A stretch of DNA of 64,000 nt from Oikopleura dioica (GCA_907165135.1 OU015568.1:16131208-16195207), one strand, 5' to 3'; numbered from the stretch's first letter, positions 26,622 through 64,000 are shown. The notes: generated by a model from the letters alone, not told the origin. Made by a program: numbers and translations.

Positions 26622-28823
26622 AAATAACTTCAGTCGAGCCATCTTTTGAAACAAGAAAACAAGGAAAAGTCAGAGGGTTTTCGCCCCGATATAAGGATCT
26701 TTATTAGCCGCGATGTTGCAAATTTTATTGGCCGCTAAAAGTTGTGTATTTATCCTTTATTGTGGCTCATGATACCGCGCTATTACAAGCGTTTTACGCG
26801 AAGAGGAGGAAAGCGTGTGCAAGCAGATGCATGCGCTCGCCGCCTGAAAAAGGGATCATCAAATCAAAACGCCGCGCCAAAATCAAAGTGGCGAGTTTGA
26901 GCACTTTCCGAGAATAACTGCGTTTTGAAAAAGAGGTAGACAAGTTCAAGGGCGTTATTAGGTCGGAAGAATATACAAAAACCAAGGCGATCATTCTGAG
27001 AATATGATGAAAAAGAACATGAAAAATTTTTACAGCTTCTCTTCACTATAAGACCACCCATAAATAAGACTAGAAAGTCAAAAAGGAAACATCAAAATTA
27101 AACTATGTTCTAAACATGAAAAGCTCCAACATTGAGCAGAATCATTATTTTTTAGACAATCTCAGCGGTAGTGCTCAATTGACCTTATTTTAGCAGAGAA
27201 AAAAATTCATCTCCTTTCCTGAAATTCTTGTAAATCGAATCTCTCTTCCAGCAGACAACTAGCAGTAGCTTATTAATAGTAGTATCAGTAGAGTTCCGCT
27301 ACTGTAACGATCTTCGAAACGTGACGCTTTCGATTATCCTCTCTGCTGCTAAAAGAACAAAGTTCATTTTTTTCGTTCTCTCACAGAATTCGTCATAGTT
27401 TCGTAATGACTCATCGGCTCATTCGAAATTCGCGGAAACTGGGAAGGGTCTATTTTCGTTAAAACCGTCTGATAGACTTCTGCGGAAGCCCTAGAGCAGC
27501 CGGCCAATCACCGGCCGCTCATTCGTCGACCGCATGTGACCCGACGAAATTTATTAATTTCTCTAGCTGACTCTACCTGTCATAAACTGTAACCAAGGTA
27601 CTGTTAGCAAAATGGCTCTGTCTCTCGGTAATGCCCAGAAAAAAGTTGATATGGTCGAATTTTGGATTTTTTTTTCTTAAAAATGAGCTAAATCAGAGGA
27701 AGTTCTAGCGGATGTGTGATTGGCTGAATTAGGTACAAAATCGCCCCATACTTTTTGGCAATAAATAAGAGAGGTAAACCTACTGGGGAAGAATTGGGGA
27801 AGGGGAGGAAGAGGAAAAGTGGGCGTTAGTAGTAATAGTAGTGACTGACCATTTGACAATTTTCCTGGTTCTCGATTGGATAAGAGCAGTGGAGCACTGA
27901 ACCGGAAGACTCACGGCTCAGTGCGGGGGGAAGGCCCCTCAGGGCCTTCTTGCCACACCTTCAGACATATGATGAGAGCATTTTACACCACCACCACCAG
28001 TGAATATGCACATGCATAATATGCATGCAACAAATATACACTGTAGGGCGCGGCGCTTTTTCGGCCACTCCACTGTAGCCATTTTTAACCACTTTTAATG
28101 GTCAGTCACTACTATTTTAGCTGTTTTAAACAAAAAAAATTATTTTTTTCACTCTACCCCCGTTTTAAACGCTACTTAACGCTATTCTGCTATTCCCTTA
28201 CTCTTAAATTAACTCTAACCCTAGCTAAACAACTTTCAGTGGTAGAAAATACGCTACTTGAGCGTCTGAGCTCTTTCTCTCGCGGCCCGCGGTTCAGTGC
28301 ACCAATCCCAGCGCTCGCTTTCACGCGCCGATCCACGCCCGAGGATTAGCCGCCCCTTTGTCCTCTCATCGATCCAGCTTTCCCTTCTCTCATCCGCATC
28401 TAGAACATTCGGTAAGTTTTCTCCTTCTCGAACATTCCATTTACTTTCTATTCAGCTCTGCCTGGGCCGCGCCCGCGCGTTCAGACTCAAGCCACGCCGC
28501 TGCCGCATGATTGCCACTTCTATCTTTCGCTCTCAAAAACCGTAAACCTTTTTTCTACTCAATCAAACCTACCAACTAATAAACCTCAAAATATTTGTAT
28601 TAAAATGAAACTTTATAAAATCACTTGGCTTTCTTGACGCAAGCATCTTTCGACGTTCAATTCGATTATCAAAACTTAAAAACCGTAAACCCTTTTTCAA
28701 CTGAGACCTGCCACTAACTAATAAAAAAGTTGATTATTTGTAAAATATAACTTTAAAATGAGTCTTTATTTTTCTTTATTAAAAGTTCTTAAAAAGACAT
28801 TATTATTTTTTTAAAATTTATTT

Positions 28824-28970
28824 TCAAAATGAAGCAGGGATAAGACTGGCAAAGAATAAGTTGAACTTGACAATGGCAAAGCAGGTAGCAGCGAGGAGTC
28901 CAAAAGCGCAAACCAAGGCGAAGATGTAGAAGAGGACGAGGAGAGCAAGGGCGAAGATGAGAAAATTCAT
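28824..28970 (-). CDS. Small hydrophobic protein (48 aa, one long TM stretch)
   Basis: MNFLIFALALLVLFYIFALVCAFGLLAATCFAIVKF...; ATG start. Confidence 0.45.
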   Translation of the reverse strand: MNFLIFALALLVLFYIFALVCAFGLLAATCFAIVKFNLFFASLIPASF

Positions 28971-29411
28971 TTTTGGTTTTTCAAAATTTTGATTTTTTGA
29001 TTTATGAAATTTCAGAGCTGGAGTCAACCCTTTTATACGCGCAGATGTTCATGGCCGGAAATACCAGCTGCGCTTGGTTTGATCTAGAATCTAAATTACT
29101 CTTGATAAATTGAATATCAATTTTGTGTATCTCCAATTTTACACTAGAATAAACATCAGATTCATTCGCACCTTGTTTATCAATTAAAATCAAGTGCGAA
29201 CGTTTTGTACTTGAGAAAGCGCAGCTGATTTTACCGGATATTGTTATTGTTTTATGGGCCGTTTTATCTTTCGGCAGTACTTGTCGGCGGCAGCTATTGA
29301 TACTTCTGAAGCTCCTAGTTGGCGCACCTAGCTCAGGTTTTGATATAAAAATGAGCACTTTCTTGCAACAACCATCAAATCAATCATCAAACCAACCACA
29401 ACAACAACAAA

Positions 29412-29765
29412 ATGATCGTGCCAATCGAACAAATCAAGCCAAAGAAGAAGACCATCACCAAGAAAATGGCAAACTTTTTCAAACGCCAATTCACCACCTA
29501 CCAGTATCCCGTCAAAGAGATCAACCAGAAGGCCCTCTGGATCGACACAAATACCAAGACCAACCTTGGTGCGATGACAAAGGCCTCCGTCAACTCTGTC
29601 ATGCATTGCCCACCTCCGCCGTACCCAAAATCCGTTGGATTGACAGCCTTGGCCACCAAAGAAGAACCGCCAATGTACTCGCACTTTTCCGATGAAACTT
29701 TGAAGTACGCTACAATCCGACGATCGTACTCTGTCCGCTACCGAACCGCCTCCAGATTTTACTAA
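29412..29765 (+). CDS. Basic 117-aa orphan protein with two PPxY motifs
   Basis: PPPPY and PPMY motifs. TATA-like GATATAAAA at 29342 and AATAAA near 29845. Confidence 0.6.
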   Translation: MIVPIEQIKPKKKTITKKMANFFKRQFTTYQYPVKEINQKALWIDTNTKTNLGAMTKASVNSVMHCPPPPYPKSVGLTALATKEEPPMYSHFSDETLKYATIRRSYSVRYRTASRFY

Positions 29766-29942
29766 AAAATGATCCTACTGCCGCGCATTCTTTCATGATT
29801 TCTTTCCTTGCCACTCTTTTGCTCATAATCTTATTTATCGCCAAATAAAATAGAAAAATTTCAGTTTGGTTTTTTATTTAACAAGTCAATTTTAATTTTC
29901 AACGCAGGTAAAAGCCAGGATGTGAGTATTTTTTGTTTATTT

Positions 29943-30199
29943 TTAAAAACACATTTTTGTAGAACAAGTGGAGGTCACAAAGTAATCCATGTCTTCTACT
30001 TCGTCGTCTGATTTCTCGTTCATATCCCAATTGATATGAAAGTTTTTTAATCTTCTAGCTAAATCCTCAAAAACAGAATCATCTATTATGGGAATATTTA
30101 AGGCTTGAAACAGACTTTGTTTCTGCCCGAGTTTATACTCTCCTTTATGATCTAAGCAATAAAAATCAAAATTTAATAATTAGTCTTACCTCTTTTCAT
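29943..30199 (-). CDS. Small spliced orphan ORF (~70 aa)
   Basis: ATG AAA AGA G|GTAAG...TTAG|AT gives MKRDHKGEYKLGQKQSLFQALNIPIIDDSVFEDLARRLKNF... Confidence 0.3.
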
Positions 30200-31698
30200 G
30201 TTTTCTTTATTCTGAATAAAACACGAGAATCGATCGCTTTTATAGTAATTTACTGTATTTATTCAAATATCACGACACACGAATGTTTCGCTACTTTTCA
30301 GGTGGCATTTTATTACTGTAGTTATTGCACACACGCAGGGCGTATCCTTGAGGATTCAAATGCTCAAGTTTCATTTTATTACAGTAGATATTGAATTCAT
30401 TAAAGACAGTCTTGGTTGTTCGATTTAAGTTCCATTTTAGTTCCATTTTATTTTATTGAGTTATTTGAGAAGTTAAGGAGGAAACTGGTGAGTGGATTTA
30501 TGTTTCATTTTATCAGGTATAAAGAAATCATATAGAAGATTATTAGGTATTGATAGCATTTTATAATTTATTAAAAACATATTCGGGAAAAAATGTTTGA
30601 CGCTAGAATTTAAGAATCATTTAAAAAAGTCCAAATCCATCACGAATGAAAGAAGGTGTGCAAACGTGGATCTTCTTGAGTCTAAAATCTTTAAATAAAA
30701 CATGGGCTGATTCTAAGGGCTTACCATTTTATATTTCTATCGCGTGTTTATTAAAGTTTCATTTGATAACAGGGGTGATCATCAATGTTGCAACGGCGGC
30801 AATTGAACATGCGGCTAGAATTGTTGGCACTTAAAACGCTATCATTTGTTCGAAGGAATTCTCTTACTTCCTACCATTTTAGATTTCTTAGATTAGAAGT
30901 TCATTTAATTTTAAAAAGCTCGTTCGATGTTTATATTTTTAGTTTCTTTGGCGCTCTTGGAGCCACTAAAGGGTGCTGTTTGAGGAGCTGTTTTTAGAAT
31001 CGATTTCAAAAAAGGATAGTTTTTCTAAATGACATGACAGTTTGATCATGTCCTCGAATAAGAAAACACACGAAAAATTTGCCCATTCTCTTGAGTTACT
31101 TTCGGCAGCTTGGGGAAGTCTACCCTTGTGGAACGTTCTTGCGGAAGCAGGTAAGTCGAGCGCTCAAATACATTCAATCATTCCCCAGGTTCAGTATTAT
31201 AGTTAAAAAATATTACTGGACACTAGCGAAGGTATGTCATATTATTGTTGATTGCGAAAGATGACAAGGCAACTCCAACCCTTGCTTATATTGATTTTTA
31301 AAAAATGTCATCATTTAAAACAATGCGGAGTTTTTGACACTTTCCGATATCTACACTATATCTGACGATTTACGGCCGCTATGGCGCTGATGAGAATTTA
31401 AATATGTTCTGATCAGGCGCGCTCTAGTCCATCGATGAGGGCGCAATTTTTTTCTTGCACTGAAATCTTCAATATATTCAGCAAGCTTAACTGGTTTGAT
31501 TACTTTATGCATTACTCGCTTAATAATGGCAAAATAACAATTGCCATTCTTCAGCGAGTTCTTTTTAGAAAAGCGCGGGGAAATAAAGCAGTGTGATGAT
31601 CCGGAGGCGGCGGAGTTAGCCCTTCAAAATGAACAAGGTAGCAGAGTTTATTTTTCAGTTATTCATTTTAAGTCATTTTTGAAACTCTCTCCCACGAA

Positions 31699-32415
31699 TT
31701 GCACCTTTCTCGAGAACGCCTATTACGTCTCATCGACCAGTTCTATTCGGCTAGCGCTGCAAAAGGAGACTATATGATGTTTTCGGATGGTGTTCATCGC
31801 AAACGCAGCTCGGACGACCGTGATATCCCTCAATCGCCAAGCCCGCAATCAACAACGACTTCGAACTCCGACTCCGCGTCGTCTTTATCAATAGATCATC
31901 CCATTCTAAATGATAAGGCTGATGATTTAGCTGGAGCTTTTGAAACGTTAAAAGTTGCCACGGGCAAAGATGGGCCAGAAATTAACAGTTCTCGTCGGAG
32001 ATTTGAATTTCTCAATCTTCTCAAAAAAATTGATGACAATCCTGTTGGAACTGCTTCTGCTCAAGTTTTGTATGTTTTATGTAAAACCGAAGCTGAATAC
32101 AAGGTGAAGTTCGGAATCCCTCTTACAACAAAGCAAATCTTCGAATGCAAGCGGGCTGCAAAGTTCGCTGGAAAAGATGGTGCAATATTTGACGAATTGT
32201 TTCGCAAGAGTTATGTGAAGGAGTGCAGTGAGCGGTCAAGAGGGTCCACTTCATCATCAGTGGGAAATGATGATGGTTATGTTCACGGCTCCGAAATCAA
32301 CGCTCGAAGTCTTCCCATTCATCCGCTTTCTTTTATCGGTAGAGCACTGACTGATCAAATGAATCCGATTGAAAAAGAAGACCAAAAGCCGAAGAAAGAC
32401 GAGTCGACAAACTAG
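31699..32415 (+). CDS. Orphan protein (~238 aa; true start uncertain)
   Basis: Long ORF with a Ser-rich N-part and a helical-looking core; no family recognised. Confidence 0.55.
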   Translation: MHLSRERLLRLIDQFYSASAAKGDYMMFSDGVHRKRSSDDRDIPQSPSPQSTTTSNSDSASSLSIDHPILNDKADDLAGAFETLKVATGKDGPEINSSRRRFEFLNLLKKIDDNPVGTASAQVLYVLCKTEAEYKVKFGIPLTTKQIFECKRAAKFAGKDGAIFDELFRKSYVKECSERSRGSTSSSVGNDDGYVHGSEINARSLPIHPLSFIGRALTDQMNPIEKEDQKPKKDESTN

Positions 32416-33189
32416 AATGGGCGAATTGATAGTTAAATCTTGGTTCGGTATCTTGCCAAGGCATAAAGTCAACGTTGATTTCTTATTTTATTTTTTTGTT
32501 TTTTTTACATTTAACGTTATTTTTATTTCATCTTCCGTTTACCAACTTAATATTTTTCTTTGACGTATTTTCACTTACTTGTTTCTTTTCTTGCTTATTT
32601 TCAGTGAATTAATTAGTGTTATCCTAAGTTGAACTTTTGACGCGCAGCGTAGTTTCATATTGATCTCCTCTTTGATTGCTGTATAAATATTTATAGTGAG
32701 GAAAATGTCTATACAGTAATCGTATCGATGTTTCGTTTAATCTGCCTCTAATCTATCCTACAATTAACAATATTTCCGTAAAACAGCCAGTGTGATAAAA
32801 TTTGAAATGTGAATATGAATTATTATCTTCAGTTTCAGTAAATCAAGCTTTGACTATTTTTAACAATTGAAAGAACAGTTGGACCTATCTGGTAGCCGCC
32901 AAGAAAACCTCAGTTTTTTGCTTTGTTGAAATATGAAAAGTTGAGCTAATGTAGGGATTAGTGAAAACTTTTTCTATATCAACTTTTATTTTTTTCTGTT
33001 TATTAATACAACATCAAACATACAAATTTCTAGTTACTCTTGTGTTTCTTTGCAAAAAGTGAAAAAATGTTTCTAGAAGTATTGTTTTTCTCAAGCATTT
33101 CTATATAAACGGCGGTTGCAGGCGGTTCAACTCAGTTTTGCATTTGACAGCAAAAGGCAAAGTCACTTGTGGAGTTTTTTGTTTGCGCG

Positions 33190-34058
33190 ATGGGAAGAAA
33201 AAAGGTTTGATTAGTACAAAAGCGTATGAGTCTAAAATAGTCGCAGCAAGCGCAGCAGAAACGCAGCAGCGGCTGTCGGACCGAGATCGCGCGCCAACGA
33301 ACTCCACCAAAACCATATCGTGGTCTTCCTCCAGCATCTCCTCCGCTATCACCTCGGGAGTATCTTGAGGTGCATTCGTTGGACGCATTGGACTCCTTTT
33401 TTCGAGGGAACGAGACGGTTGCTCTGGACGAAAGTGCGTTGAACGACACTATCGTCGGTGGCGAAAATCGCGTGCCGATTGAAGCTGCGCCGAAATCTCG
33501 CACTTATCGCCAGCTCTTCTTCACCGATGACGAGTCGACTGACGGAGAACTTGACCAAGCGTTCATCGAAGAGCCCGAGCATGGTCGTAGACGAGCAAAC
33601 TTTTGCTACACCTATCGGGGGCTCATAAAAAAAAAGGGCCGCAAAAATCCTGCCGAAGTCATTCGGTACGTAGATGACAAGGGCAATTCAAGCCGGTGGT
33701 TCTTTCGCCCTTTGTACGCCCGTTTCTGCAGTACCAGCCACGGCTACTTAAAATTCGACGAGTCTCGTAAGTCTTTATTTCTTTATGTTTTCAAACTTGA
33801 AATTTAGGGTATGAAGGGACTGGCGAAGATCTTGACAGAATCTTAAAGATTCTTGATAAGGTCTCCCGAAATCGAGTCTTCGAAATGGCGGAGCTGGAGA
33901 AGGAATTAGAGAATGAAGAATATGGGGTATTGGTCGAAACAAAGGATTATCTTTTGCCTCTGCGCAACATCCAGTTTGGAATTGCCAACCTCAAGAAAGA
34001 CGATCCTGACCGAGCTCCAGAGCACGATGAACCTCCAGCATACGTTTTCGAACCTTGA
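33190..34058 (+). CDS. Spliced orphan protein with C-terminal PPAY
   Basis: TATATAAA at ~33102. Exons 33190-33204, 33241-33766 and ~33809-34058, joined in frame by GT-AG introns. Ends DEPPAYVFEP*. Confidence 0.6.
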
Positions 34059-34522
34059 AGACTGCTAAAAAGCTTGTTGTCAAATAAAAAACTTGTACTC
34101 TTTTTATTGATGTCATTTTTTAGCATTTTCTAGCGTTATTTAAATATTGAAGTTTAAATAGAATTAAGTAAATGTGTTAATTTGATCAATCTAGAAATAT
34201 TAGCGCGTGAGCAGGAGCGAAGAGCGTCCAGCCGGCGAGCGGCGAAATCATTTCCAGAAGTGAGGGTTTTCATTTCGAGATTTGGAAATCAAAAAATGCG
34301 GAGGTTTTCGCTCACATGGGAAAATCTCTGCTATCAAATCACAGCGGAGAAAGAATTTCTAAATCAGAGAAGAAAATAAAATTTATCGAAAAGAGAATTT
34401 ATTTTATGACTGACCGCTATCAAAGTAAATGTTTCTCACACGCGCGTGTATAACCGATAGCCTGCCGGCTTTTATTATCAATAATTCCTCCCTTTTTTCA
34501 GAAGGTCGGCGTAAGTGAGTTT

Positions 34523-35773
34523 ATGTTTGTGTACGATGGCGCCCAACCGGGAACTCCACGCTCAGTTCACAATCATCCACCAGCGAACGCGAGTAGAACA
34601 TCGAGTCTCCGGCTTTCCCCGACTCCGAGCTCCAGGACGCTCGACGATTTCACGTTTGCGAAGCCCGCTCTTCCGTCTCGGTAAGTTTTAACAGAGAGAT
34701 ATTTAATTACAAAAAATATAGTTCGATGCAAATGGCAACGAACGATCTTCAAGGTCCAGATGAAGCTCAAACGCGGCCAGTAGCTGAGCCAGCTTTTACC
34801 GCGTACGAAACAACAAGCTTTGGTAACGCTCCTCCGAGTACCACTTTGCCAGAGCCTGTTGGAACTGGTCGGTATCAACCGATGCATGCGCCATCTTCGC
34901 CCCCACCCGCTTCACCTCGCCGATTATCCGCTGGCCCATCTCAGAAACGGGTACGATTCATGTATTTTTTTGAATTTTTATTCAAATTATTTTCAGGTCA
35001 ATAACTGCGGCGGTTCTCCGAGATTTGACCTTTACTGTCTTCTCACGGCTATGGTTGCCAGCGGACTTTGCGCAGTCGCTGTTTACGTCCTCTTCGCGTC
35101 TGCGCAGCAATGTTTGCCAACCCTCGCCATGGACTCTGGAAATGTCGCTCCTCCGCTCAACCATGCTCGCCGACGTCGATCTCTCACCAGGGATGATTGC
35201 ATTTGCTCCTGCTCGTTCGACCCCCGCGATAAGGGCTGGCTTATCTCCCTTGAAACATCAAAGCCCCTTCCTACCTGCGACGTTGAGAATTACACCATCT
35301 CCGTCAACGGGAAGAAGGTGGCAAATCCTGATCAATTGGAGTTGGAATTCGCTCGGGATTTGCTTGATCTCTTGAGCGCTGTTCTTCTGAAAGACGAAGA
35401 AAACGCTCATCACGACAACGGCAGCGCCGGTAACTCGGAACCGATGACATCCACAACTGCACTCCAGACTACTTCCCGCGCTCCAACCACCACATTCGCC
35501 CCTGCTGTCGGTGAACAGGACGAGATCGTCGTCGATGAACAGAAGGAGATCGACGATCTTTTTGTCAATCCCGGTAAATATTCGCATATTTTTCAAATTT
35601 TAATAATAAAAAAAGAAGTTGCGATTCTTGAACCGCTTGGAGAAATTGACATCGGAAGTGGCGACGATTTCTGGGGCTCCGTTCCAGCAGGTAAAAGCTC
35701 CTTTATAAAACTTTTACAAATACAAATTATAGTTGAGTACACTCTTCCCATCGACGAAAACGAAGAATTCTAA
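34523..35773 (+). CDS. Predicted type II membrane glycoprotein with furin site (5 exons)
   Basis: Pro/Ser-rich N-tail, TM segment LYCLLTAMVASGLCAVAVYVLFASA, RRRRS, CICSC...C ectodomain, NYT sequon and Thr-rich stalk. Introns at 34681-34721, 34951-34996, 35574-35618 and near 35691-35732. Confidence 0.65.
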
Positions 35774-36103
35774 GTATCCTTCTTAAAACTAACCGTTGAT
35801 GTATCTCGCTTACTGTTAACAAATTCACGCTTCATCAAATTTTTCTGCTCACATTGAAACTTTACGCATTCCCACCCTCTTAATCATTTAGACGCACCTT
35901 CTATCACTTGTTATGCTATTATGATCTATTTTAAAACTGCCCTTTTAATGCACCCTTATCGACACTTTAACAGTTTGGTAATATTTGACTGAGCTGTAGC
36001 TTTGCACTTATTCGACCGACAACCATTTTCGAACTGTTTTTGTCAATGAAGCTTTTTCTCCTTTTATTGTTTCGTTTTTTATCTAGCAAGTTTAAGCAAG
36101 GCA

Positions 36104-39927: not shown

Positions 39928-40020
39928 AAATTTTTTTCGATGTAGACAGTCTGTTTTTCCAGTATTAACTGATGTAATAGCTGTTTTTTCCGACTTATTG
40001 TTTTCAATCCCTTGTTTCAG

Positions 40021-52300: not shown

Positions 52301-54811
52301 TATTTGGTCAAGTTTGTTGTACCATTCATAACAAAATGAGCCTTTTGCAAAAAGTTCTTCATCAAGACCACACGATCTTGCGAGCTTTTCCAGCGCCATC
52401 GGACAAGTGTAATTTTTGAAATCTCGAAAACTGAGATTGAGCGCTTCCAAAACCATATATCCAGTTGCTCGTTTTATGAAGCTAATGAGCTTCGTATTTC
52501 CGCCAACAAAGAAGAATAAAACAGAAACCAGGGTTGGGAAAAGAACTACCATGTCGTATCGTTCGCCGACCCAAGAATAAATTTTCAACTTGTAAAAGTC
52601 TTTCAGATATTTGAGTTTTTTACGATACGCAGCCAACAGATAAGGATTACTACCTTGTCCAGCTTCTTTTTTCTTATTTTCATCCTCAATAAGTTTCTCA
52701 TAATGTTGAACGCCTTGAAATATGCAACTAGGAATCTTGCTTTCCATTTTCTTCTGAAGAGTAAGAAGATAATTAATGAGCTCAGTGATCATTATTAAAG
52801 TTCCCTCGACTTCATCCGTTTTACGAACGAAGCACTCTCGCTCACCGCTACTAGTGATAGTCGCCAAAGTAGCCAATTTATGAAATTTTTCTCCAGTTGA
52901 AAAACCGTTACAGTTCATTGTGCACTCAATATCGTAAACGACGAAATATTCTTGCACATAGTCGAACGCTGGCAGGTACTCTTCAGCAACTAGCTCGTGC
53001 ACATGATCCATAATCCGATGAGATTCGACAGTCTGATTTATAATATCAATAGTGTCAAGATTGCAGGATGCTTCATGCTTCTTCATTTTTCTTTTATTGG
53101 CGTGAGTATACAAACAATTAGGGGTTTTACACTTAGGAAGCTCTATAACCATTCGATCAGGTAAAATTCGAACAAGTGTTTGGTCGTTGAAAACGTTCGG
53201 TATCAGCGTAAGAACGTTACGTACTGGCATATATTCAGCATAAAGTGACGATTCAACACTATCGTTCGTATTTTGCAACGGTGAAATTGCATCAGTATTA
53301 TCGTCGGAAGAAGCAGATTCCAGCGGAGCCTCCGGCAACAAATCATCATCATCCTGATAAAGCAAATCATCATTCGACCGTAGTTCTGACGAACTCTCCT
53401 CGTTGTTTTTTGATACAGTGCATTGATTTTCGACGAATGGGTTTATTTCACGACTTTTTTCAGTACTCGCATTCTCGGTCAATTTATCGAAATCAACAAA
53501 TGATAAATCGTCATCATTCGTTTCTGCAGCAGTTGTTCCTAAAAGTTCTTGCATGTCCTCTTCGTCGCTCTGCAATACTTCTGTGGCGTCGTGTAGATTA
53601 TGTTTATGATTTTTTGTCCACCGTAGAATTTGAGCAGTCTTTTTTCTGCTTAAAAATCGTGAACATTTACTGTAACGCCGCTGATAATCCTTATTCGCCG
53701 CGTAAAGCGGTAACAATCCAGGATAATTATCGAACTCTCTGTAGGTAAGATTCGTCAGTCGTTTAAATTCTCTTGCAAACTCATCTTCTTGCATAGGAGC
53801 AGCCAAAATATTCATATTTACGCAATCTGAAGTTCCCATCGCCGCGTAAACACAGCGCTTCAGATTGACATTGTCGTTTATGATTTTACCGACGAAAAGT
53901 CGAATATTGACTTTGTATTTGTTCCTTATTTTTTGAAAAATACCATCTGCAATCGAAAATTGTTTGTCGGCGTGCGCTTCCCCAAACAGCTCTTTTTTTA
54001 TCTCCGCAATTTTGAGATTATATTCGCAAGAAGGTAATTTAGGCCATCGAACTTTGACCAGTGCGTTCCAAATACTTACCCAGTTTTTATCACGATCCTC
54101 GAAAGTGCGCCTAGTAGGCAAAAGATGAAATGTTCCAAGACGCCAAAAGTAGGGACGCGCGCTTTGAAGAACGACACAAGGTCGAGTTGACATTGGATTC
54201 GCAGACTCTAATCTGCCAATGACCTCTCCAACATTTTCGCGACATCCAACTCGATGCGGTCGATAACTAATACCAAGAGGACGAAAATAGCCACCATACA
54301 ACGCATAAATATCAATGTCCAAAAATCGTTCTAGTTTCGGTAAATCTGCTCTTGTTGGCGACAAACCAAACTTTTTAACCAGTTCACTTGTATCTACTTT
54401 TGAAAGCGATTCCCTTAGTTCTTGATTTAATTTTGTTGGAACTTTTGGATAAATCTGTTTCAAATAGTTCCACCAGTTAATTCCCAGCAGAATTGTATCG
54501 TAGACATTCGACTGATTTCGCTCATCTTCCGGATTTGCGGGAGAATACTCATCGCTGGAAATACTCAAAGTGCGAGTTCGGCTCTCATCTTGCTCGTTGT
54601 TGTCATCAGAATCTTCATCGCTTTCCAATGGATCGGGCCTCTGGCGAGGTATTTTTACCACTTCTTCGGATTCACTTTCATAATTTTCTCCTGCAAAGAA
54701 AGCACTTTCTGCAGATTTTTGATTATTTGCTGATGCTAATAAATGTCTTCGTTTTTTTTGGTAGTTAGTTTTTGATAAGCCTTTTGCTCTATTAGGCAAA
54801 AAACGCTTCAT
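49361..54811 (-). CDS. polB: Protein-primed family B DNA polymerase (1816 aa, intronless)
   Basis: Exo motifs YDIEC, RYD and YNYNDC. Pol motifs YDFNSLYP, KFILNSAVG and YCDTDS. NLTGG TPR-type region, inserted endonuclease-like segment (IDGY...EYRGCAFH) and a C2HC finger. TATATAA ~35 nt upstream of ATG 54811. Confidence 0.95.
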   Translation of the reverse strand: MKRFLPNRAKGLSKTNYQKKRRHLLASANNQKSAESAFFAGENYESESEEVVKIPRQRPDPLESDEDSDDNNEQDESRTRTLSISSDEYSPANPEDERNQSNVYDTILLGINWWNYLKQIYPKVPTKLNQELRESLSKVDTSELVKKFGLSPTRADLPKLERFLDIDIYALYGGYFRPLGISYRPHRVGCRENVGEVIGRLESANPMSTRPCVVLQSARPYFWRLGTFHLLPTRRTFEDRDKNWVSIWNALVKVRWPKLPSCEYNLKIAEIKKELFGEAHADKQFSIADGIFQKIRNKYKVNIRLFVGKIINDNVNLKRCVYAAMGTSDCVNMNILAAPMQEDEFAREFKRLTNLTYREFDNYPGLLPLYAANKDYQRRYSKCSRFLSRKKTAQILRWTKNHKHNLHDATEVLQSDEEDMQELLGTTAAETNDDDLSFVDFDKLTENASTEKSREINPFVENQCTVSKNNEESSSELRSNDDLLYQDDDDLLPEAPLESASSDDNTDAISPLQNTNDSVESSLYAEYMPVRNVLTLIPNVFNDQTLVRILPDRMVIELPKCKTPNCLYTHANKRKMKKHEASCNLDTIDIINQTVESHRIMDHVHELVAEEYLPAFDYVQEYFVVYDIECTMNCNGFSTGEKFHKLATLATITSSGERECFVRKTDEVEGTLIMITELINYLLTLQKKMESKIPSCIFQGVQHYEKLIEDENKKKEAGQGSNPYLLAAYRKKLKYLKDFYKLKIYSWVGERYDMVVLFPTLVSVLFFFVGGNTKLISFIKRATGYMVLEALNLSFRDFKNYTCPMALEKLARSCGLDEELFAKGSFCYEWYNKLDQIRKAKELPAYPCFYSTMSVATNEYVIEMDNIIATKIQEGKWKNERKELASQICRFLKLTHIFDDPVANGHYDNLPPVDESSAGESFLQDRDTIDLYVKWTTKIDKFISWSDDKNRWHLDADDEATCAFFRFSPKMYRASVDRWYALEEKSTNEKPITMLDFLIDYNYNDCVLLQGSISSFALSNQRRFGLGIHSELSISQLAHKIAFLKYDRKCPPIYSISPAFPELLRDMRNNLTGGIVQVLHRAVYLNGPNPAIPEFAWKTRLGKIIKAVITYDFNSLYPQSFRGDLPCGPGIKYTLQKMGYSSSLCYADEERFFSKGMFHQRQNTSLESIRWLEYLNWSDEFSFNGSIEHSYNLEEKKIGNYYIDGYAESKDEHILIQSNDEENSPIRLIKKRYFFEYRGCAFHPCTNQKCKIKPSRAEKKELTDPATGTKIYIPFTKDGLLKKEDSRMQKIIEDVRKMDGIENWGKPLKHWNGSEWEETEGPQNFPHCITIIMACEWKREWKILESTNKSPYSKSYPFLFKGAKNPSGLASGQEGVTEAEFKKLVLEEDENGESKFFGFAMVDLRSPRSVIEKYKYMPPIFARKKIYREDLQGDLNETLSDNQKKRMFPCEENVFCFNVDNYFISSQMLHYYAKMGIEYRVKYFLSYYRGKPFENFVNDLVADRVKAAAKGDQAGQNWIKFILNSAVGYFAINRSKFLKTRILSSSDLYTALRNPRLKSLSTLQAEKTKCDPLHEATFSKKVVNHSTALQVQLFVYQNSKLLFFKFRDVLDEYMEEGMVQICYCDTDSFVLALGEETLDECVKASLKDEWETKIKPKWFATDTPASQKEPGLLKVEAKLKSGWFIALSAKCYIMTECEPNRIDEAIVAPENRHRVFEVLEEYNQAVLNETNVKRSAKGCAKKIKLRYLDYLAALFSDNMEDSVVKNMPLFMFDQVNKQIKTKVLSKRVINGALKKRIIDKDKIRTYALKKADGTYY

Positions 54812-54919
54812 AAAAAAGTTAACACAAGATTTATTCACAGCTAGCGTTATATATAAAAAAATTGTCAGCAGAGAGTAACACGTTCAAGTACGCCATTCGC
54901 AGCGCTGTCAGTGGAGTCG

Positions 54920-56814
54920 CTAACGCGACAGTTTAGCTCGTTTGGCTGGCGATCGTCCGATTTGTTCCGTATTGTCCAGATGTATTGAAGGAGTTTGATT
55001 GTCTGGCGTTGCCTTGCACATCACAGTCGATCTTGAAATGACGGAAGCTTCTAAAATTTTTTTAATACAGTAATTTTAACTTTTAAAACTAACCATTTCT
55101 TGACGCATCTAAAACTAGATTATCCACCGGAAATCGCATGATGAACGGAGCCCAGCCCTTTTTTAAAGCAGTCCTGAACGTTATTCGGATTTGCACTGTT
55201 CCCATCATATCTCGACGATCGCCAAAATAAATGGGAACAAACCAGTTTTGATTACAAAACTGAAAAAAATCAAGGCCTTCCCCCACAGTTTTATTTGCAT
55301 AGCGTCCGTTATGTCGAAGAAAATTAAGATAGTGATCTTGAGCAGAATTCCAGGGAGTACCGTGAGCGTGCTCGTTATCAACTAAGATTTCAAACTGCTC
55401 AATTTCAAATCCCTCCTCAAAAAGGGATGTTTTTGTAATACATCTGTCAAATGAAGGAGTTTTACGCTCCTCGCTCATTCCCGTAAATATCAACATATCC
55501 GGAAATAAGCCTCGAGAACATTCAACGATATATGTTCGATACCCTGGGGCCCATGTTCCAACGCACAATCGGGGGTGATAAAAGGGAATTTTAGCCTGTT
55601 TCTTACCAATCATCAAAGGTCGCTCATCCTTCGTTGGAGTGCAGAAAACACTTTCAAATTGAAGATGTCTAAGCATATCCGTAGTTAACGAAAAGTTAAT
55701 TGCGCTCTTCTTCCAAAATATTACATATTTGGTTTCACCGTCAATGACTCTATCGTACTTTGGAACTCTTCGATAGATCTTGTGAGCTCTCCAGGTTCCT
55801 GCAACTGCCGTTATGTTGTTTTCTTTGTCTTCAGGCGTACCTTTGTCGTAGAGCTCCTTTCGTTTATTTTCAGGTAAGTAAGGACCGCCGATACTTTCAA
55901 TTTGAAGATATTCAGGAGGTTGACCTTCTTCTGGGCTTTTAAACTTATCATCCGAACAGTCGCAAGAAGCTTCTGTTAAATGTTCGACCCATTCACTCAC
56001 TAGTTGAATGTCCTTATTAAAAGGATAATTCATTTTGGTACTAATGACGTTTCCTTTAACATCTGTCTCGTAAATATTGCTCTGTAAAGTCCTGAACTTT
56101 TGGTATTCGCTCCATTTCATTGCCATTCGCCGAGGAGTCTCCGATTTATCTTGATCCACGCTAGTTTGAGTAAGGAGCTCAAATTTAACTCGTGAGTCTG
56201 CAGGTAAAACTCGTTGTTGTCTCGCCAATCCGTGGCTAATTGGCGATCGAACAAGGTACCGATGATACAGCATTTCACATTTAACAGCTTTCTCGTCTTT
56301 TGAGATTTTAATGGACGTCTCCATTTCTTTCCACTCTTCCATCGCGTATTGTTGCCGATTTTCAACAAGATTGTAACCATTATGCTTGCACGTTAGAGTA
56401 AGCAATTCGTCAGCATCCGCATCGTAAGAATCGTAATGCCCCTCTGGAAATAATTCCACTTCCTGAGCTTTTGGCGAGTAGTTGAGTTTTTATAAAATTG
56501 TTGAAAAACAAGTATTCCAATCCATTTGTCCAAGTTGAAAAGATGCATTCATCCAAAATATAGAAATTCAATTTATCTATTATTTTCGACGCAAAACTGT
56601 TATCAGGAACAAAGTTAGAAGGCATTTTTAGTTGAAATAAAATCGCACATCTGTCCAATTTGATTGGCAATTTATCAGGAGGCATAGCAAATGTTATTTT
56701 TCCGTTACCAGTCGAGAAGTCGCCCAAAGTGTGAAGCACTTTATATCCAGCGTAGGGATCTGGATTCTTCTTAGGCTTCTTGTAATAAAGTAGGTTTCCA
56801 AAATTTTCTTCCAT
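54920..56814 (-). CDS. Major capsid protein (Polinton-type double jelly-roll), with one frameshift near 56480 and one intron (55051-55093)
   Basis: PDNSFASKIIDKLNF, LNYSPKAQEVELFPEGHYD, VLPADSRVKFEL and GLFPDMLIF...FEILVDN resemble Polinton capsid motifs in the expected order. The last exon ends SPAKRAKLSR. Confidence 0.75.
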
Positions 56815-57069: not shown

Positions 57070-57267
57070 TTATGTTCGTCGCCTTCTTCGGCGCTTTCTC
57101 CGTTTTCGATTCGGTCTTCTTCGACGTCTCAATCGACGAGTTCGAGGTGCTCGCCGACGTCTTCGAGGCCGTCGTCGACGTTTTCGTTGACGAGTCGAAG
57201 GGGAAGCTAGAACCAAATTTCGTAATCGTGATAATCGCGGTTTTACAAGGTAAGATCTGCTTGTCAT
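57070..57267 (-). CDS. Protamine-like Arg-rich protein (65 aa, 32 Arg), candidate DNA-condensing core protein
   Basis: ATG preceded by TTTTTTTGTTTAG. Arg runs use mixed CGA/CGT/CGG/CGC/AGA/AGG codons. Lies between the integrase and capsid genes. Confidence 0.75.
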   Translation of the reverse strand: MTSRSYLVKPRLSRLRNLVLASPSTRQRKRRRRPRRRRRAPRTRRLRRRRRPNRKRRKRRRRRRT

Positions 57268-57292: not shown

Positions 57293-59416
57293 TTATCGTT
57301 GGCGAGCGCGTCGTTGTTTCAGTTCAGAAAGAGTCATAACAAGATTTAATTCTTTTTCATAATAACGCCTATCTAATTTAACGCCTTTAGAATTAATAAG
57401 GGTAAATGAAAATACTCTAGCACCGTGATGAATTTGATAAATTTGATAAAGTTCAGTGGACCACTTTGGTGTAAAACCTTTTTCGAAACGTTTGATATTT
57501 TTACGTGGAATCCTCACAACATCCCCAACGTGAAGCTTGCTCCACGTTTGGCGATATTGCTTTGATCTTTTTGATTCTAAATAGTCAAATAATTGACGAG
57601 CGTTATTACGATTTACATCTGAAGGTTTAACATTAGTAGCTGAATGCACAGTATTATTTATAGCAGTATTTACAGATTGTAAAATGTGAACCCAACGTTT
57701 TACGTTTCCTTGACTTGTGAAAGCTCTTCCAAGACGGGCTTCCAGGGTTTTACTAAAATAAAATGCTCATCTGTAACTGTGAATAAAACGAACTTACTTG
57801 AAACGCTCAACTATCGCTGCTTTATGAGGACCTGTATTAAACACACGAGTCATCCCCCATTTTGCAAGAAGAACTGGGACTTCTTGTTGAAATTCAGAAC
57901 CTTGATCGGTCACAAAAAATGTGTGCCCGGGCAAGTCAAGTGATTGAAAGATAGATTGCAGATTTTTCGCTACTTCTCCAGACTCTTTTGTTATTAATTT
58001 TCGAACAAAACTTTGTCTTGATAAAGCGTCAACAACACACAAAATATATTTGTAATTGTTATTGAATTCACCAAAGTTTTGATAAGCTAAAATAGTATCG
58101 GCAAAAAGACACGAATATAAATCAGTAGCTATAATAGGGTTTCGCGCAAAATTTCTATGAAGTGGCTTATGAAGAGAAATAGACTCATTCATACGCTTGA
58201 AACGATCCACATTAAGACCGCTATAAAATGACGGTTGTTCAGGATTATAAAATAAATCTAAAGTATATGGAAGTTTATTAGCGGGACCAGAAGTTTGAGG
58301 TTGATTCGAGGACTGGTTCTTCGTCGTCGTTGTTGTCTCCCGTGTCGGAAGTAACTGCGTCGCCCTCGCTAAATTCAGGGGAGATTCGTTTGCGTTTTGC
58401 GGCGGCCCGTTTTGTTGGAGCTGAGTTATTAGCTCGACCCCTTTTCTGGATTTTGGAAGTTCTTCAGATTTTCCGGCATGTTTGGGTTTTCGTACTGTAA
58501 TAACTCGTCCAGCGGGAGCCCGATTTTTTTCTGTCTTTCGTTTATTGAAGTTGTACGCGGGATTCTCGACAATGACGGATTGTTCTCTTGGATTTCTTGA
58601 ATTTTTTCTTCCATTCCGGGCGTTTCGTTGGTCATTATCATCGGTTGAGTACTGAGATTCGTCGGCGCTTTTTGAACCAGTCCCGGTTGAAGATCCGTCA
58701 TCTTGATCGTTGAAGTCGGAAACTTGTTCACTATCAGTTCCTGAGGAAATTTCAACTCTCCGGTTTTTGGGTTTCTTGCTGCGATGAGTTGTGTCATAAA
58801 TTGAATCCCTGAATTTTCTGAAATCATCGCTGGTGATAGTATAGCCATCGTTGTTTTTTCGCTTCCTTTGTCGTACTTGTTTAGGCGCTTCAATTCTTCC
58901 TCGTTTACGCCGCGTAACTGGTTGACTTTCTTCGAAACTGTCGTTGTCCATTGATCTATTTCTCCTCCTTTTACGAGCGCTTGATTTAACATCGGGTCGT
59001 CTGGACGGTTTTGAGTAGACGCTGCTGATATCGGAGTCATAGTCGTCAAAGTTGTTGGCTCCGTAGAGGGTAGTTTCACTTTTCGCGGTCGGCCCCTTTT
59101 CTTCTTCGAAGGAAGAATCGAACTCACTGGCTTCCTCGCTTCGGATTGCAGGCGGTTGACCTCGTATTCGTCTAGACCGTCTAGCTTGTCCTCTAGGTAT
59201 TTTCCGGTTGCAAAGTCCCGCAAGTAGCTTGGCGGTACCCTCTTCCTCGGTATCATAATCAGGATAAGGTTCCGCTTTCGTTTTTGGGGCCCGAACTCTC
59301 ACTCTATTAGTCAGAGGATTAATTTCCCAAAAAGAGCAAATGTTCAACATCTGCGACAGTGAAAAATAACAACCTCCATTCAAGGGTATTTTATTGAGGT
59401 CAATTTGACCAGCCAT
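57293..59416 (-). CDS. Retroviral-type (RVE) integrase with ~400-aa N-terminal extension; intron 57753-57797; 692 aa
   Basis: FADT, VVDALSR, VTDQGSEF and, after splicing, VERFNKTL...NNTVHSATNVKP...GDVVRI...KGFTPKWS. Confidence 0.92.
58429..59256 (-). CDS. Nested alternative-frame ORF (275 aa) with AT-hook and PPSY inside the integrase gene
   Basis: ATG start and 828 nt stop-free in a second frame. Contains KKRGRPRK and VPPSY. Confidence 0.55.
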   Translation of the reverse strand: MIPRKRVPPSYLRDFATGKYLEDKLDGLDEYEVNRLQSEARKPVSSILPSKKKRGRPRKVKLPSTEPTTLTTMTPISAASTQNRPDDPMLNQALVKGGEIDQWTTTVSKKVNQLRGVNEEELKRLNKYDKGSEKTTMAILSPAMISENSGIQFMTQLIAARNPKTGELKFPQELIVNKFPTSTIKMTDLQPGLVQKAPTNLSTQPMIMTNETPGMEEKIQEIQENNPSLSRIPRTTSINERQKKIGLPLDELLQYENPNMPENLKNFQNPEKGSS

Positions 59417-59674: not shown

Positions 59675-60043
59675 ATGGACGAACTAGCAAAAAGAGCTGA
59701 ATCCTTCACCCAAGTTAAAATTGAGAACTTGAACGTCCAAAATTGGATAAGCGGTGGGACTCATAAGGTCACCGGAAAAATCAAGAAATTTACGCTCGGA
59801 GATATAACATTTCCAGGGCAAGAGAAACTGGAGACGAATCGCGAAGCCTTCTTTCATTTCAATCCAAAAATTGGAATCAAGAAGACGCGGAAATTCGGAA
59901 CTACTTTTACGAGCCGACAGGTCTACTTACTGATCTACAGGACAAAACAATCATCGTCTGTGTCAACGGATATACGCCTGCAGACAACAACACTCCAAAC
60001 TTTCAAGGAAAGATTCCCGGTCAATTCGAAGTCGCTTTCGTAA
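59675..60043 (+). CDS. Orphan 122-aa basic protein abutting the ATPase
   Basis: ATG start; its stop is 1 nt before the ATPase ATG (TAAAATG). Confidence 0.6.
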   Translation: MDELAKRAESFTQVKIENLNVQNWISGGTHKVTGKIKKFTLGDITFPGQEKLETNREAFFHFNPKIGIKKTRKFGTTFTSRQVYLLIYRTKQSSSVSTDIRLQTTTLQTFKERFPVNSKSLS

Positions 60044-60044: not shown

Positions 60045-60781
60045 ATGCATCAACATTTAACGAAACTCGTCCCCGACTTCCGTTTCCGTCACCCCTGTTC
60101 ACTGCTCATTGCGGGCTCGACCGGCACAGGTAAAAGTAACTTTGTTAAAAATTTGATTGAGTGTGACGGAATCAACGGTGATATTGAATCCATTTATTAT
60201 TTTATGCCACGACTAGAACCGCTTCATATTACCCCTCATAGTCATCAACAACTATATTTAATGGAAGGGCTCCCCTCTCAAGACTGGGTAGACGACACTT
60301 TTCAAATAGAAGCAGATAGTAAGAGCCTTATAGTTGTAGACGATTTATGGTCATCGTCAGTCGAGAGTAACACTTGCGAATATTTACTCTCATATGGGCG
60401 TAGACATTTAGGTGTCTCGTTAGCATTTATAGCCCAGAATTTTTACGAAAAGGGTAAAAAGGCCATTACAGCAAGGTTTGTTTTAACTAATTTTTCTTTT
60501 TCAGAGCTAATGATTGTTTTAGAAATTGCATGACCAGCTTTGTTCTAATGAACAATCATACTGATTGCGGCATTAACAAGACGATTGCAACCAAGTGTGG
60601 CCTGGTCGAGCCTTTTAATCAAGCCATGAAGCTGTTCAAAGAAAGAAGAATCCCTAACTACAACTATGTCATCCTCCAACGAGACGTTCGACACGCGGAC
60701 CAACCTCGAGTAATTACGAATTATTTCGGGGAGGTGGCTGGGTTGGGTGGTGCACCATGGATGTTTGGCCTGTCACAGTAA
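60045..60781 (+). CDS. DNA-packaging ATPase (A32/FtsK-like), intron 60476-60522, 229 aa
   Basis: Walker A GSTGTGKS, Walker B IVVDD and GRRHLGVSLAFIAQN. Splicing restores ARNCMTSFVLMNN. AATAAA at 60815. Confidence 0.92.
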
Positions 60782-60964: not shown

Positions 60965-61795
60965 CTAAAAAAGTAAGACGAAGTTTTGAAGCGAAAACTT
61001 ACTTTTACTATCGAGCTCGGCAATCCATTTTTCCCCAAGATCCTTAAAGCCGCCAAAATACTGGCCTTGATCACGTTGCAGAAACATTTTAGCAGTGACA
61101 CAATAAAATTGAGCAGTAATTTTGCGCATTTCTGATACTAAATATTCTTTCGGTTTCATCTGAGCAGCGTTACAAAGCGCATAAACACGTTTGTCAATTT
61201 TTTTCTTATCAGACGAATACTTCGGATCCATTTCCAACAGTCCTCTTGCCCAAATTTGAGCGTATGCGGCGTACAGCGCTTTTTCGCACAAGAAAGCTTT
61301 ACCGTACAGATTCAAATTCCGAAAAAATATGTCTAAATTAGGATATTTATGGCATTGAACCGTACAAGAAAGAGAGCTGTTTTCGTAAACAAATTCTCGT
61401 TTGATAAGGCCATTTCTTATTTTCTTATAACCTAAGCAATAAGGGGCTCCTTCGTGGCGTTCATCGTTCAAATATTCTTTGACAGTTTTCGTCTTATGTT
61501 TAACCACTTCGTTTGGCGATGGATGGATATTCGAAGGCGGTCCGGGTGAGATGCATTCCTCCACTTGTCTTATTACGATTGAAGAAGATTTAACGCCCGT
61601 TTTTTCGTCAACGCTCTCTTTTACGAAAAACGTAATGGAGGACGAGAAGTCAGTTACTCCGTTGCATAAAAACTCGTAAAGAATGGGTTGATCATTTTGG
61701 AAGCGATTTTCATGAGTTACAACAACTCCGACGTCGTACTGATGCAGATTATCTCGAGAGAACACTTCAAAAATTTTTTTCATGATACTGATCAA
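60965..61795 (-). CDS. Orphan protein, paralogue A (ends probably spliced)
   Basis: Shares blocks with 62083-62985: ITFF..IVIRQ, REF.Y, YPNL, YAQIWARGLLE, FGG. Confidence 0.7.
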   Translation of the reverse strand: MISIMKKIFEVFSRDNLHQYDVGVVVTHENRFQNDQPILYEFLCNGVTDFSSSITFFVKESVDEKTGVKSSSIVIRQVEECISPGPPSNIHPSPNEVVKHKTKTVKEYLNDERHEGAPYCLGYKKIRNGLIKREFVYENSSLSCTVQCHKYPNLDIFFRNLNLYGKAFLCEKALYAAYAQIWARGLLEMDPKYSSDKKKIDKRVYALCNAAQMKPKEYLVSEMRKITAQFYCVTAKMFLQRDQGQYFGGFKDLGEKWIAELDSKSKFSLQNFVLLF

Positions 61796-62082
61796 ACAAC
61801 TTTAAGAAAGATTTTTTTATTACGCGCAGCGCAAGAGAGCACTTAAAAGTAAATCGATGAGCGATACGCCAGTCGACGGATGTAGATTCTTATTTTGCTT
61901 TCAATACAGATCTGTAACGTCGAAACAATCGCGGAAAATAATGACAGATGCTGGTCGTGGTTGTTGAAGCGCTGTTTTCCTGAAAATATTCAATTTTCCA
62001 ATTTCTTGCCGAGGAACGAAAGAATCGGCTGCAATTTCGAACACTTCGCTATTTGTCGAGAAAAACGGGTGAAACTAAATCA

Positions 62083-62985
62083 TTATTGAAGCGTTGGAAA
62101 AAAAGAGCTTACAAAAGTATAACCGAGCGCAAGCGCTTTTTCTTCTAACTCTTGAATATATTTTTGGAATCTTCTTTTACCACCAAACCAAGGCATATCA
62201 GGGTAGACGCCTCCATAGTAATAAGCCCGTCTCGAGCATTCTAATCGATAGTAATTTCCATAAACTAATCTGCAAATTGAAAGGTGATAAAGAAACTCAT
62301 CTTGGGTTCCAAGTTGAGGATAAATTTCGTCGTAGGGAATTCCAATTTCGACCAAAAGACTCTCGATAAATGAGTCGATCGCTTTAGTGTCAGGTTCATT
62401 GTCCAGTGTTTGGAAACGCGCATCTTTTTCCAACAACGAGCGAGCCCAAAGTTGTCCATATAGAACTATCAGTATACGAAACGGATACTCGGCATTTTTG
62501 CAGGGATTTAAAGAATGAAAGACTTCTTTTAAATTAGGATATATGATTTTTTGGATGTTACAAAACGCATCTTCAGCCAAACTGCCATCATAGAAGAACT
62601 CTCGCTGAACCATGCACATGTGTTCCGTTATGGCCCGCCGACCGAAATTTACTGCAGGACATCCGCTGTTGGCCACGCCGTAAGAAGTCATCGTTGGCAG
62701 ATTATCATAAATTTTATTCTGATGCATATGATGAATGCAAAAAGATGGTGAATACTCGATCAACCACTCATGCTGTCGAACAATTACTCTCTGTTCGATT
62801 TTTTTGGAGGTCTTATTATAGTAACTTTCAATAAAGAAAGATATTCGCTGCATTCGTTTAAGCACTCCTGTAGATTTTACGGATTGAAGGAGCGGATTGT
62901 GGCAGAAACGAGAAGGTCTCTCAACCAGAAAACAGGGAAAATCAGACTTTACGTCATCGAAAAACTCCAAATTTTTTATTAACAT
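62083..62985 (-). CDS. Orphan protein, paralogue B
   Basis: ISFF..VIVRQ, REFFY, YPNL, YGQLWARSLLE and FGG. Confidence 0.7.
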   Translation of the reverse strand: MLIKNLEFFDDVKSDFPCFLVERPSRFCHNPLLQSVKSTGVLKRMQRISFFIESYYNKTSKKIEQRVIVRQHEWLIEYSPSFCIHHMHQNKIYDNLPTMTSYGVANSGCPAVNFGRRAITEHMCMVQREFFYDGSLAEDAFCNIQKIIYPNLKEVFHSLNPCKNAEYPFRILIVLYGQLWARSLLEKDARFQTLDNEPDTKAIDSFIESLLVEIGIPYDEIYPQLGTQDEFLYHLSICRLVYGNYYRLECSRRAYYYGGVYPDMPWFGGKRRFQKYIQELEEKALALGYTFVSSFFPTLQ

Positions 62986-63205
62986 TTTGCGAAATGAGAG
63001 AAAGTAGAATAAAATTTAGTATCAAATTGGTCACTGCCCTCGAGCGCCATTAACTTTCAAACGTAGAATCTAATGGAAACTCTAAGTGAAAGTTTAGCCC
63101 AAACGATGAGTAGATTGAAAATCGCGCGTTTTCTGAAAAATTCGTGATAAATCAAGTAAGAGTATAAAGAGACGAGCGAAAACGAAATGACACCAGTCTT
63201 TCGAG

Positions 63206-64000
63206 ATGGCCGACTTATCAGAAGAAGAGCGAAAAGCTTACGAGGAACAATATACACAAGGACTGCGAAAAATGAGAGATTTTCGAATCTACACAAAAGA
63301 CTTTGTGGAAGAAGTCGAATTCATAAGCAACGTCTGGCCAGAGAAAGTGGTGTTGCTTGAGCACAAAATACCCGAAGTAAAGAACGAATGAATTTAATTT
63401 AACTTATTCTTTCTAGCACTGCAAGCGGCTTGACGGAATGAAGACCCTGTTCGATCAACGCATGTGGGACGGTGCAGAAGAGCGAAAAGACGACATCGGC
63501 CGGAAAGTGCGAGATATGCGGACGCTTATGCAAGAACTGGAGAACACTCTGAAGATTCATTTTCGAACAGCTTATGACCGCTACTATTTCACATTGATGA
63601 ACACCTCATTTTAGATCTACTCTTTCTTACTCCGTTTATTATTGTTAAATTTCTGCATGCTATCGATTAATAGTTTAATAAATAGGCAAATTAAAAAATT
63701 AACGGTTATTTTTCCAGATGAGTTGCTTGACCAGACACGAACTTAATGCTTATCGTCAAAAAGTGGCGCAAGACCTTCACCAAATGAAAACATTCAATTA
63801 CATATCAAGGCTTTTTATTAACACCGTTAGACTGGCGTTTATCTGCGCCAATGACGAAATGATGCTTTACGAGCATTTGGTGCCAAATGTAAGTGACCGA
63901 CAAAAAATAACTAACTATTCTCAAAAGCATTGCATGCGACTCGACAAAATAAGAAAGAAACTAAATGAGCCGCTGTGGAAAGCTGCCCTTTTACGCGAAG
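63206..64000 (+). CDS. Multi-exon orphan gene running off the window
   Basis: ATG at 63206, followed by coding-like segments separated by AT-rich stretches ending in TAG/CAG acceptors. Confidence 0.4.

Follow-up and report, generated by a model that had tools for sequence, protein, structure and literature searches.

The right-hand 16 kb of a 64,000-nt window of the Oikopleura dioica genome (GCA_907165135.1 OU015568.1:16131208-16195207; positions below are counted from its first letter) is a genuine, largely intact Maverick/Polinton, a new and well-preserved member of this family from a rare marine lineage. The window corresponds to a locus in the pseudo-autosomal region (PAR) of the Okinawa assembly OKI2018_I69, as the annotated proteins P0012 and P0052 map to it at ~100%. 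We read the region from 27 to 64 kb as two things side by side, a Maverick that extends from 48.36 kb to beyond 64 kb and, next to it, host genes at 29–44 kb, and give this reading a probability of roughly 0.72. An earlier note on this DNA had proposed a single spliced, host-adapted Polinton that included a long block of accessory genes; a genuine, little-decayed element with short candidate introns in its core stands, but the accessory genes are not supported as part of it.

The strand layout of the region is simple and agrees with the strand-coherent blocks and the divergent point that the earlier note had described. Genes lie on the plus strand at 29–48 kb and on the minus strand at 48.36–59.4 kb, and a divergent gap of 258 nt follows at 59.4–59.7 kb. 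The core genes of the element are tightly packed in two divergent modules, and those on the minus strand come in the order integrase, Arg-rich open reading frame (ORF), capsid gene, protein-primed PolB (pPolB) and two small ORFs:

57293–59416, minus strand: integrase, identified with Pfam rve
57070–57267, minus strand: protamine-like (Arg-rich) ORF of 65 aa, identified by composition
55089–56814, minus strand: major capsid protein (MCP), double jelly roll, identified with AlphaFold2 (AF2) and Foldseek
49361–54838, minus strand: pPolB, identified with Pfam DNA_pol_B_2
48840–49307, minus strand: ORF155, a small ORF downstream of pPolB
48364–48795, minus strand: ORF143, a second small ORF downstream of pPolB
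60045–60781, plus strand: A32/FtsK-HerA-type packaging ATPase, identified with Pfam Pox_A32

All four hallmark genes of Polintons that had been named for this locus are present, pPolB, the ATPase and the integrase by Pfam (the last with an rve score under the cut-off) and the MCP by AF2 and Foldseek. The polymerase gives the strongest match, with an E-value of 2.8e-14 and 53.3 bits to DNA_pol_B_2 (cut-off 25.8) and a second matching stretch at E = 3.3e-6. Its ORF runs for 1825 codons without a stop, or 1816 aa counted from the first ATG. The polymerase proper begins near residue 600 and is preceded by an N-terminal extension of ~600 aa (52979–54838, minus strand). The 11 relatives of pPolB are 1.0–1.9 thousand residues long and include O. 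dioica PAR.g12375, at 85–90% identity, and metagenome proteins at 40–50%; in the metagenome relatives, residues 100–400 of the extension are 35–55% identical. Searches of the extension and insertion with Pfam (five pieces), with phmmer against PDB, and with a PDB profile search from an eight-sequence alignment yielded no HNH nuclease, VSR nuclease or other domain, and an AF2 model of residues 95–620, built from seven sequences, scored only 42 in the predicted local distance difference test (pLDDT). Downstream of the polymerase, ORF155 and ORF143 may form one gene. With its C-terminal 155 aa, P0008 (chr1.g1460), which is a fusion model of pPolB, matches positions 48373–48837 at 46%, and the ORF143 region, which reaches ~48.37 kb, is the leftmost conserved Maverick sequence shown.

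Structure prediction and fold search identify the MCP as a double-jelly-roll capsid protein. A full HMMER search of 1.84 billion representatives retrieved 40 relatives, typically 540–620 aa long and colinear with the window's gene over both of its ORF pieces. The AF2 model, built from 21 relatives, has a pLDDT of 71.8, and its top Foldseek matches are almost all double-jelly-roll capsid proteins. Specifically, BFVD gives as its best matches a protein from a Cotesia bracovirus (3e-7), one from a MELD virus (9e-7) and the capsid of an adintovirus (2e-6), with capsids of giant viruses and virophages after them, while the PDB matches, with E-values from 6e-4, are PBCV-1, SGIV, PM2, PRD1, mavirus, STIV and ASFV p72. 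The TM-scores are low (~0.2–0.26), so the assignment rests on the consistency of these matches; a profile search against PDB sequences gave nothing significant. The gene is read in two frames, with one frame change inside it. We consider a short intron more likely here than a frameshift, because the metagenome relatives are colinear across the frame change and because three further O. dioica copies have gene models, made with RNA-seq hints, that continue through it.

The integrase consists of two ORFs parted by a short GT-AG-ended stretch near the end of the catalytic core, a single candidate intron whose junction was read by eye. The alignment with its relative P0020 (chr1.g1462) ends at the end of the first integrase exon, and reading over the candidate intron, again by eye, brings back the usual continuation of the catalytic-core motif. 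P0020 is 51% identical to the integrase and gives an independent rve match (E = 3.6e-5) to the same stretch of the profile. The N-terminal region of the integrase, ~430 aa, is of low complexity, and the core has no significant match among PDB sequences. The ATPase is likewise composed of two ORFs with one candidate, very short GT-AG intron between them, its junction also read by eye. It matches Pox_A32 at E = 6.4e-6 and 26.3 bits (cut-off 22.8), more weakly Adeno_IVa2 and FtsK_SpoIIIE, and nothing significant among PDB sequences. The candidate introns in integrase and ATPase are ~30–45 nt long, and the median intron of the host is 49 nt. The element appears to be adapted to its host, as two or more of its core genes have candidate introns that are short in the manner of the host.

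Between integrase and MCP, ~26 nt past the integrase stop, begins the protamine-like ORF, which bears out the protamine-like gene of the earlier note: 32 Arg and 4 Lys among 65 aa (55% Arg/Lys), with no Pfam match. Its composition and position suggest a DNA-condensing core protein. Judging by what is established about such elements, a linear double-stranded DNA copy would be replicated by protein priming, the Arg-rich protein would condense this DNA, the ATPase would package it into a capsid built of MCP, and the integrase would insert the element into the genome.

Other copies and relatives, compared at the protein level and with distances taken from gene numbering, place these genes together elsewhere. 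P0001 (PAR.g12375) is a fusion model that joins the N-terminal part of an MCP (74–94% identity) to a polymerase (85%), P0020 joins integrase and MCP, P0008 joins pPolB and a homologue of ORF143, and P0018 (chr1.g2762) is a further capsid gene. Read from these chimeric NCBI gene models (P0001, P0020 and P0008), the order INT-MCP-PolB-ORF143 is thus shared by two O. dioica families with an identity of only 35–50%. In three cases, then, Maverick genes that adjoin each other have been annotated in O. dioica as a single fused 'gene' (MCP+PolB, PolB+ORF143 and INT+MCP). The metagenome relatives, at 40–50% identity, lie on contigs of at most 26.7 kb, and one JGI metagenome contig of 18,234 bp holds relatives of both MCP and pPolB. 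An unbroken polymerase ORF of 5.5 kb and the 85–90% identity of a second copy, which lies on the same chromosome arm, make the element look young or constrained.

To the left of the element, the plus strand carries the following features:

29000–44100, plus strand: block of about 6–7 spliced genes (approximately PAR.g13022–g13027), from the annotation by gene numbers
44194–48124, plus strand: PAR.g13028, to which pieces of P0012 map at 95–100% identity
44702–47248, plus strand: intron-free ORF of 848 codons within g13028, from the ORF scan, with GC-rich low-complexity exons on both sides

The block at 29–44 kb most likely consists of ordinary, fast-evolving O. dioica host genes that adjoin the insertion. 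By gene numbers, ~7 annotated genes fall in 19 kb; the O. dioica genome as a whole has 1 gene per 3.7 kb, a median exon of 152 bp, a median intron of 49 bp, 11% non-canonical introns and many genes that defy classification (PMC8008620). High gene density, runs of genes on one strand, lack of decay, short introns and orphan status are thus traits of the genome of this species at large. The orphan status that the earlier note had given to the block holds at the Pfam level, with none of the 66 plus-strand ORF pieces in 27–48.4 kb matching a family.

Block and core differ in composition. GC content at third codon positions is 0.44 in block ORFs and 0.35 in core ORFs. In 600-bp windows, the GC content of the block is patchy and exon/intron-like (0.31–0.53) and that of the core uniform (0.35–0.44). 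The Jensen-Shannon divergence (JSD) of codon usage between block and core is 0.036, against ~0.017 for same-size samples from one set; a tetranucleotide likelihood ratio mostly follows GC and is not an independent marker of the boundary. Furthermore, block exons are short and interrupted, whereas core ORFs reach 5.5, 1.6 and 1.4 kb. The motifs said to be shared by block and core did not reappear: no enriched non-trivial k-mer spans both, only AT-rich trivia, and all-against-all BLASTP found neither block-core nor block-block paralogy.

The relatives of individual block genes point the same way. g13024 (P0052; 34523–35770, plus strand), with ~170 nt of introns in 1.25 kb, has as its only paralogue chr1.g431, at 54%, and an ENA relative at 51–55%; chr1.g431 is ~1000 gene numbers away from the nearest annotated Maverick gene on chr1. 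At the protein level and by gene numbering, no paralogue of g13024 or g13028 lies next to the remaining Maverick loci in the annotation (PAR.g12375, chr1.g1460–1462 and chr1.g2762), where the core genes, by contrast, do have theirs. For these two genes, then, core and accessory genes were not found to co-occur in other copies, as they would in a joint element.

g13028 is the sole possible cargo gene that remains, and with its 848-codon ORF it may be either a host orphan or a lineage-specific cargo gene. The ORF has no Pfam, PDB or other domain match and no relative beyond its own gene model P0012, neither at PAR.g12375, where the core is 85–90% identical, nor among the metagenome relatives. 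One hydrophobic stretch is predicted at its N-terminus, in sequence that does not belong to the annotated model. The only paired CxxC...CxxC of 27–64 kb lies at 46900–47100, residues ~729–777 of this ORF, and suggests a small zinc-binding module near its C-terminus.

We weighed three other explanations of the region. One continuous element longer than 36 kb, from 27.3 kb to past 64 kb, with a 20-kb orphan block for envelopment and host manipulation, is very improbable. It would account for a block that lies on one strand, is orphan at the Pfam level and shows no transposable-element (TE) decay or insertion within 29–48 kb, and nematode Mavericks with a fusogen and cargo genes are known (10.1101/2022.07.12.499685). 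The membrane budding or envelopment that it invokes comes down to single hydrophobic segments in a few block genes; no fusogen-like or other viral domain was detected in the block ORFs (Pfam) or in the 848-codon ORF (Pfam and PDB sequences). Against it stand the composition and codon usage of the block, the genome-wide nature of the traits that had linked it to the core, the missing common motifs and paralogues, the position of the g13024 paralogue far from annotated Maverick genes, and the metagenome contigs with relatives, none longer than 26.7 kb. Nothing marks 27278, the proposed start, as an end, and no inverted repeat joins 26.4–48.4 kb to 59.4–64 kb; the size was extrapolated rather than observed. 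A Maverick that reaches left only to ~44.2 kb, with g13028 as an opposite-strand, lineage-specific cargo or accessory gene and 29–44 kb still host, is a more serious contender, which we regard as possible though doubtful, and we hold the cargo status of the 848-codon ORF with the same reserve. The ORF has no introns for 2.5 kb, as in core genes, its GC content (0.39–0.40) equals that of the core, and its flanks, being of low complexity, are similar in this to the N-terminal region of the integrase. Codon usage at 45188–47245 lies outside the expectation for block samples (JSD 0.042 to the block; expectation 0.010–0.024). On the other side, the ORF lacks any homologue or domain, its hydrophobic stretch falls in a part that the annotated model omits, and the annotation, aided by RNA-seq hints, makes g13028 a single spliced gene that includes GC-rich exons with a codon usage unlike that of the core.

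Several observations also weigh against a boundary at 48.36 kb, or against parts of the evidence behind it. The codon usage of 45188–47245 falls within the expectation for core samples (JSD 0.023 to the core; expectation 0.011–0.023), and only ~240 nt separate the 3′ end of g13028 from ORF143, which leaves little space for a typical Maverick terminal repeat; together, the two suit an element that reaches at least 44 kb. The ends of the element were not seen, with neither terminal inverted repeats nor a target duplication found in the window, and we infer the left boundary rather than observe it. The rve match of the integrase (E = 1.9e-5, 25.3 bits) lies under the curated cut-off of 32.6 bits. 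The candidate introns were called from canonical GT-AG signals and the gene model of a relative. The searches for relatives cover two of the ~7 block genes, g13024 and g13028. In addition, gene numbers are only a loose gauge of how far a gene lies from a Maverick, since the annotation of Maverick genes is poor and patchy; the window's own core ORFs are missing from the protein collection, where an exact look-up of eight simple ORFs found none.

That the core is a fossil or domesticated gene set, and not a potentially autonomous element, is unlikely in our view. Such a reading would fit the frame change in the MCP gene, the other loci annotated as fused and possibly rearranged gene models, and the 96% of vertebrate Maverick loci that are degraded (PMC8097293). 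It would also fit the fact that a Pfam search of all ORF pieces of 60 aa or more at 48.3–64 kb matched no adenain-like protease or penton; but the element continues past 64000, and both genes may lie beyond that point. The polymerase ORF, moreover, holds 1816 codons without a stop, integrase, ATPase and MCP are otherwise open, their spacing is tight and virus-like, and there are several genomic copies, one of them 85–90% identical. As three other copies have RNA-seq-hinted models that continue through it, the frame change in the MCP gene fits an intron. On all these grounds we prefer a Maverick from 48.36 kb to past 64 kb beside host genes at 29–44 kb. A broader proposal would see here a chordate (larvacean) Maverick lineage turned host-like, with introns in integrase, ATPase and perhaps capsid, a polymerase of 1.8 thousand residues with a conserved 600-aa N-terminal domain, a protamine-like protein of its own and, in the 848-codon ORF, at least one cargo gene specific to the lineage, or, in its extreme version, the whole 20-kb block. 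We think it rather unlikely as a whole.

The right arm of the element carries further ORFs:

59675–60043, plus strand: ORF122, which lies directly upstream of the ATPase and diverges from the integrase
60965–61795, minus strand: ORF of 276 aa, tandem paralogue of the next
62083–62985, minus strand: ORF of 300 aa, tandem paralogue of the preceding one
63000–64000, plus strand: short ORFs from the ORF scan, with the element running on past the window

The 276-aa and 300-aa ORFs are 27% identical over 194 aa (BLASTP, E = 4e-15) and have no Pfam or PDB match. ORF122 has a sub-threshold Pfam match to Gasdermin, the pore-forming domain (E = 0.023, 14.6 bits against a 25-bit cut-off), which is a lead and not a finding.

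The element shares its core with known Mavericks and differs from them in several respects. Like the Mavericks/Polintons of vertebrates (Barreat & Katzourakis 2021, PMC8097293; Kapitonov & Jurka 2006), it has pPolB, an rve integrase, a double-jelly-roll MCP and an A32-type ATPase in two compact modules, occurs in multiple genome copies and resides in an aquatic host of the chordate lineage. In contrast to them, it has candidate short introns in at least two core genes, a polymerase of ~1.8 thousand residues with a conserved 600-aa N-terminal extension, and an Arg-rich mini-gene between integrase and MCP, while protease, penton and termini are not seen within this window. Intact vertebrate and nematode Mavericks are reported to be intronless (PMC8097293; 10.1101/2022.07.12.499685), so the candidate introns would be the unusual feature here. 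Nematode Mavericks (Widen et al.; Jeong et al. 2023, PMC10748475) are likewise animal elements with possible non-core genes adjoining and with lineage-specific extra sequence in the polymerase, and they carry a gB-like fusogen and cargo genes (10.1101/2022.07.12.499685). Here, however, no homologue of the class III fusogen, the WASP protease or the KRMA kinase was detected, pPolB has no HNH/VSR nuclease insertion by Pfam or PDB sequence search, and there is no support for the neighbouring genes being cargo.

Adintoviruses and MELD viruses (Starrett et al. 2021, PMC8502044) provide some of the best viral structural matches of the MCP model. Adintoviruses carry pX-like genes and gasdermin-like genes, the latter with a C-terminal regulatory domain (PMC8502044). 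The small Arg-rich protein of the window recalls, by composition only and hence as a lead, the adenovirus pX-like domains of their virion proteins, whereas the sub-threshold hint in ORF122 is to the pore-forming domain and not to the C-terminal regulatory one. No PLA2 gene, adenain or LXCXE 'Oncoid' motif was found in the window, the motif being absent from all of 27–64 kb. Rfam and tRNA scans returned nothing, and a bacterial promoter/terminator scan is uninformative for a eukaryote. Mavericks ('MAV') are among the annotated TE classes of the O. dioica genome (PMC5240408); a literature search of the searchable library found no description of the gene content, introns, polymerase size or copies of an O. 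dioica Maverick.

Repeats form an island in the left 27 kb of the window. A complete Ty3/gypsy (Tor-like) long terminal repeat (LTR) retrotransposon occupies 8545–16132, with a gag-like ORF, an aspartic protease and a reverse transcriptase-RNaseH-integrase polyprotein; its LTRs of ~330 bp are 99–100% identical, which indicates a very recent insertion. A 191-bp satellite with a 384-bp higher-order unit fills 20277–26390 in three blocks separated by repeated 1.8-kb spacers and has strong GC and AT skew. Just to its right, at 26438–26625, lies a near-perfect palindrome, whose 49-nt arms are 88% complementary and enclose a spacer of 90 nt; it resembles a miniature inverted-repeat transposable element. 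Direct repeats of 300 bp at 599–898 and 6836–7135, 100% identical and 6.2 kb apart, enclose a 593-aa ORF without Pfam match and a DDE_1 (pogo-like) transposase ORF (4285–5430, minus strand, is given with this locus). Furthermore, segments at 1–600 and 18255–19669, 18.2 kb apart, are repeated at 81–88% identity, with the LTR element and other repeats between them.

Mavericks are regarded as endogenous representatives of an old group of double-stranded DNA viruses that infect animals and protists. At 1 gene per 3.7 kb and with many orphans in the host genome, tight packing and orphan status beside a provirus are no evidence of viral cargo. The closest relatives of this Maverick lineage are marine metagenome sequences, and its core genes may have gained host-type mini-introns, which intact elements of vertebrates and nematodes do not have. 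That the smallest and fastest-evolving chordate genome holds an apparently intact copy indicates that the lineage is active there now or was so recently.

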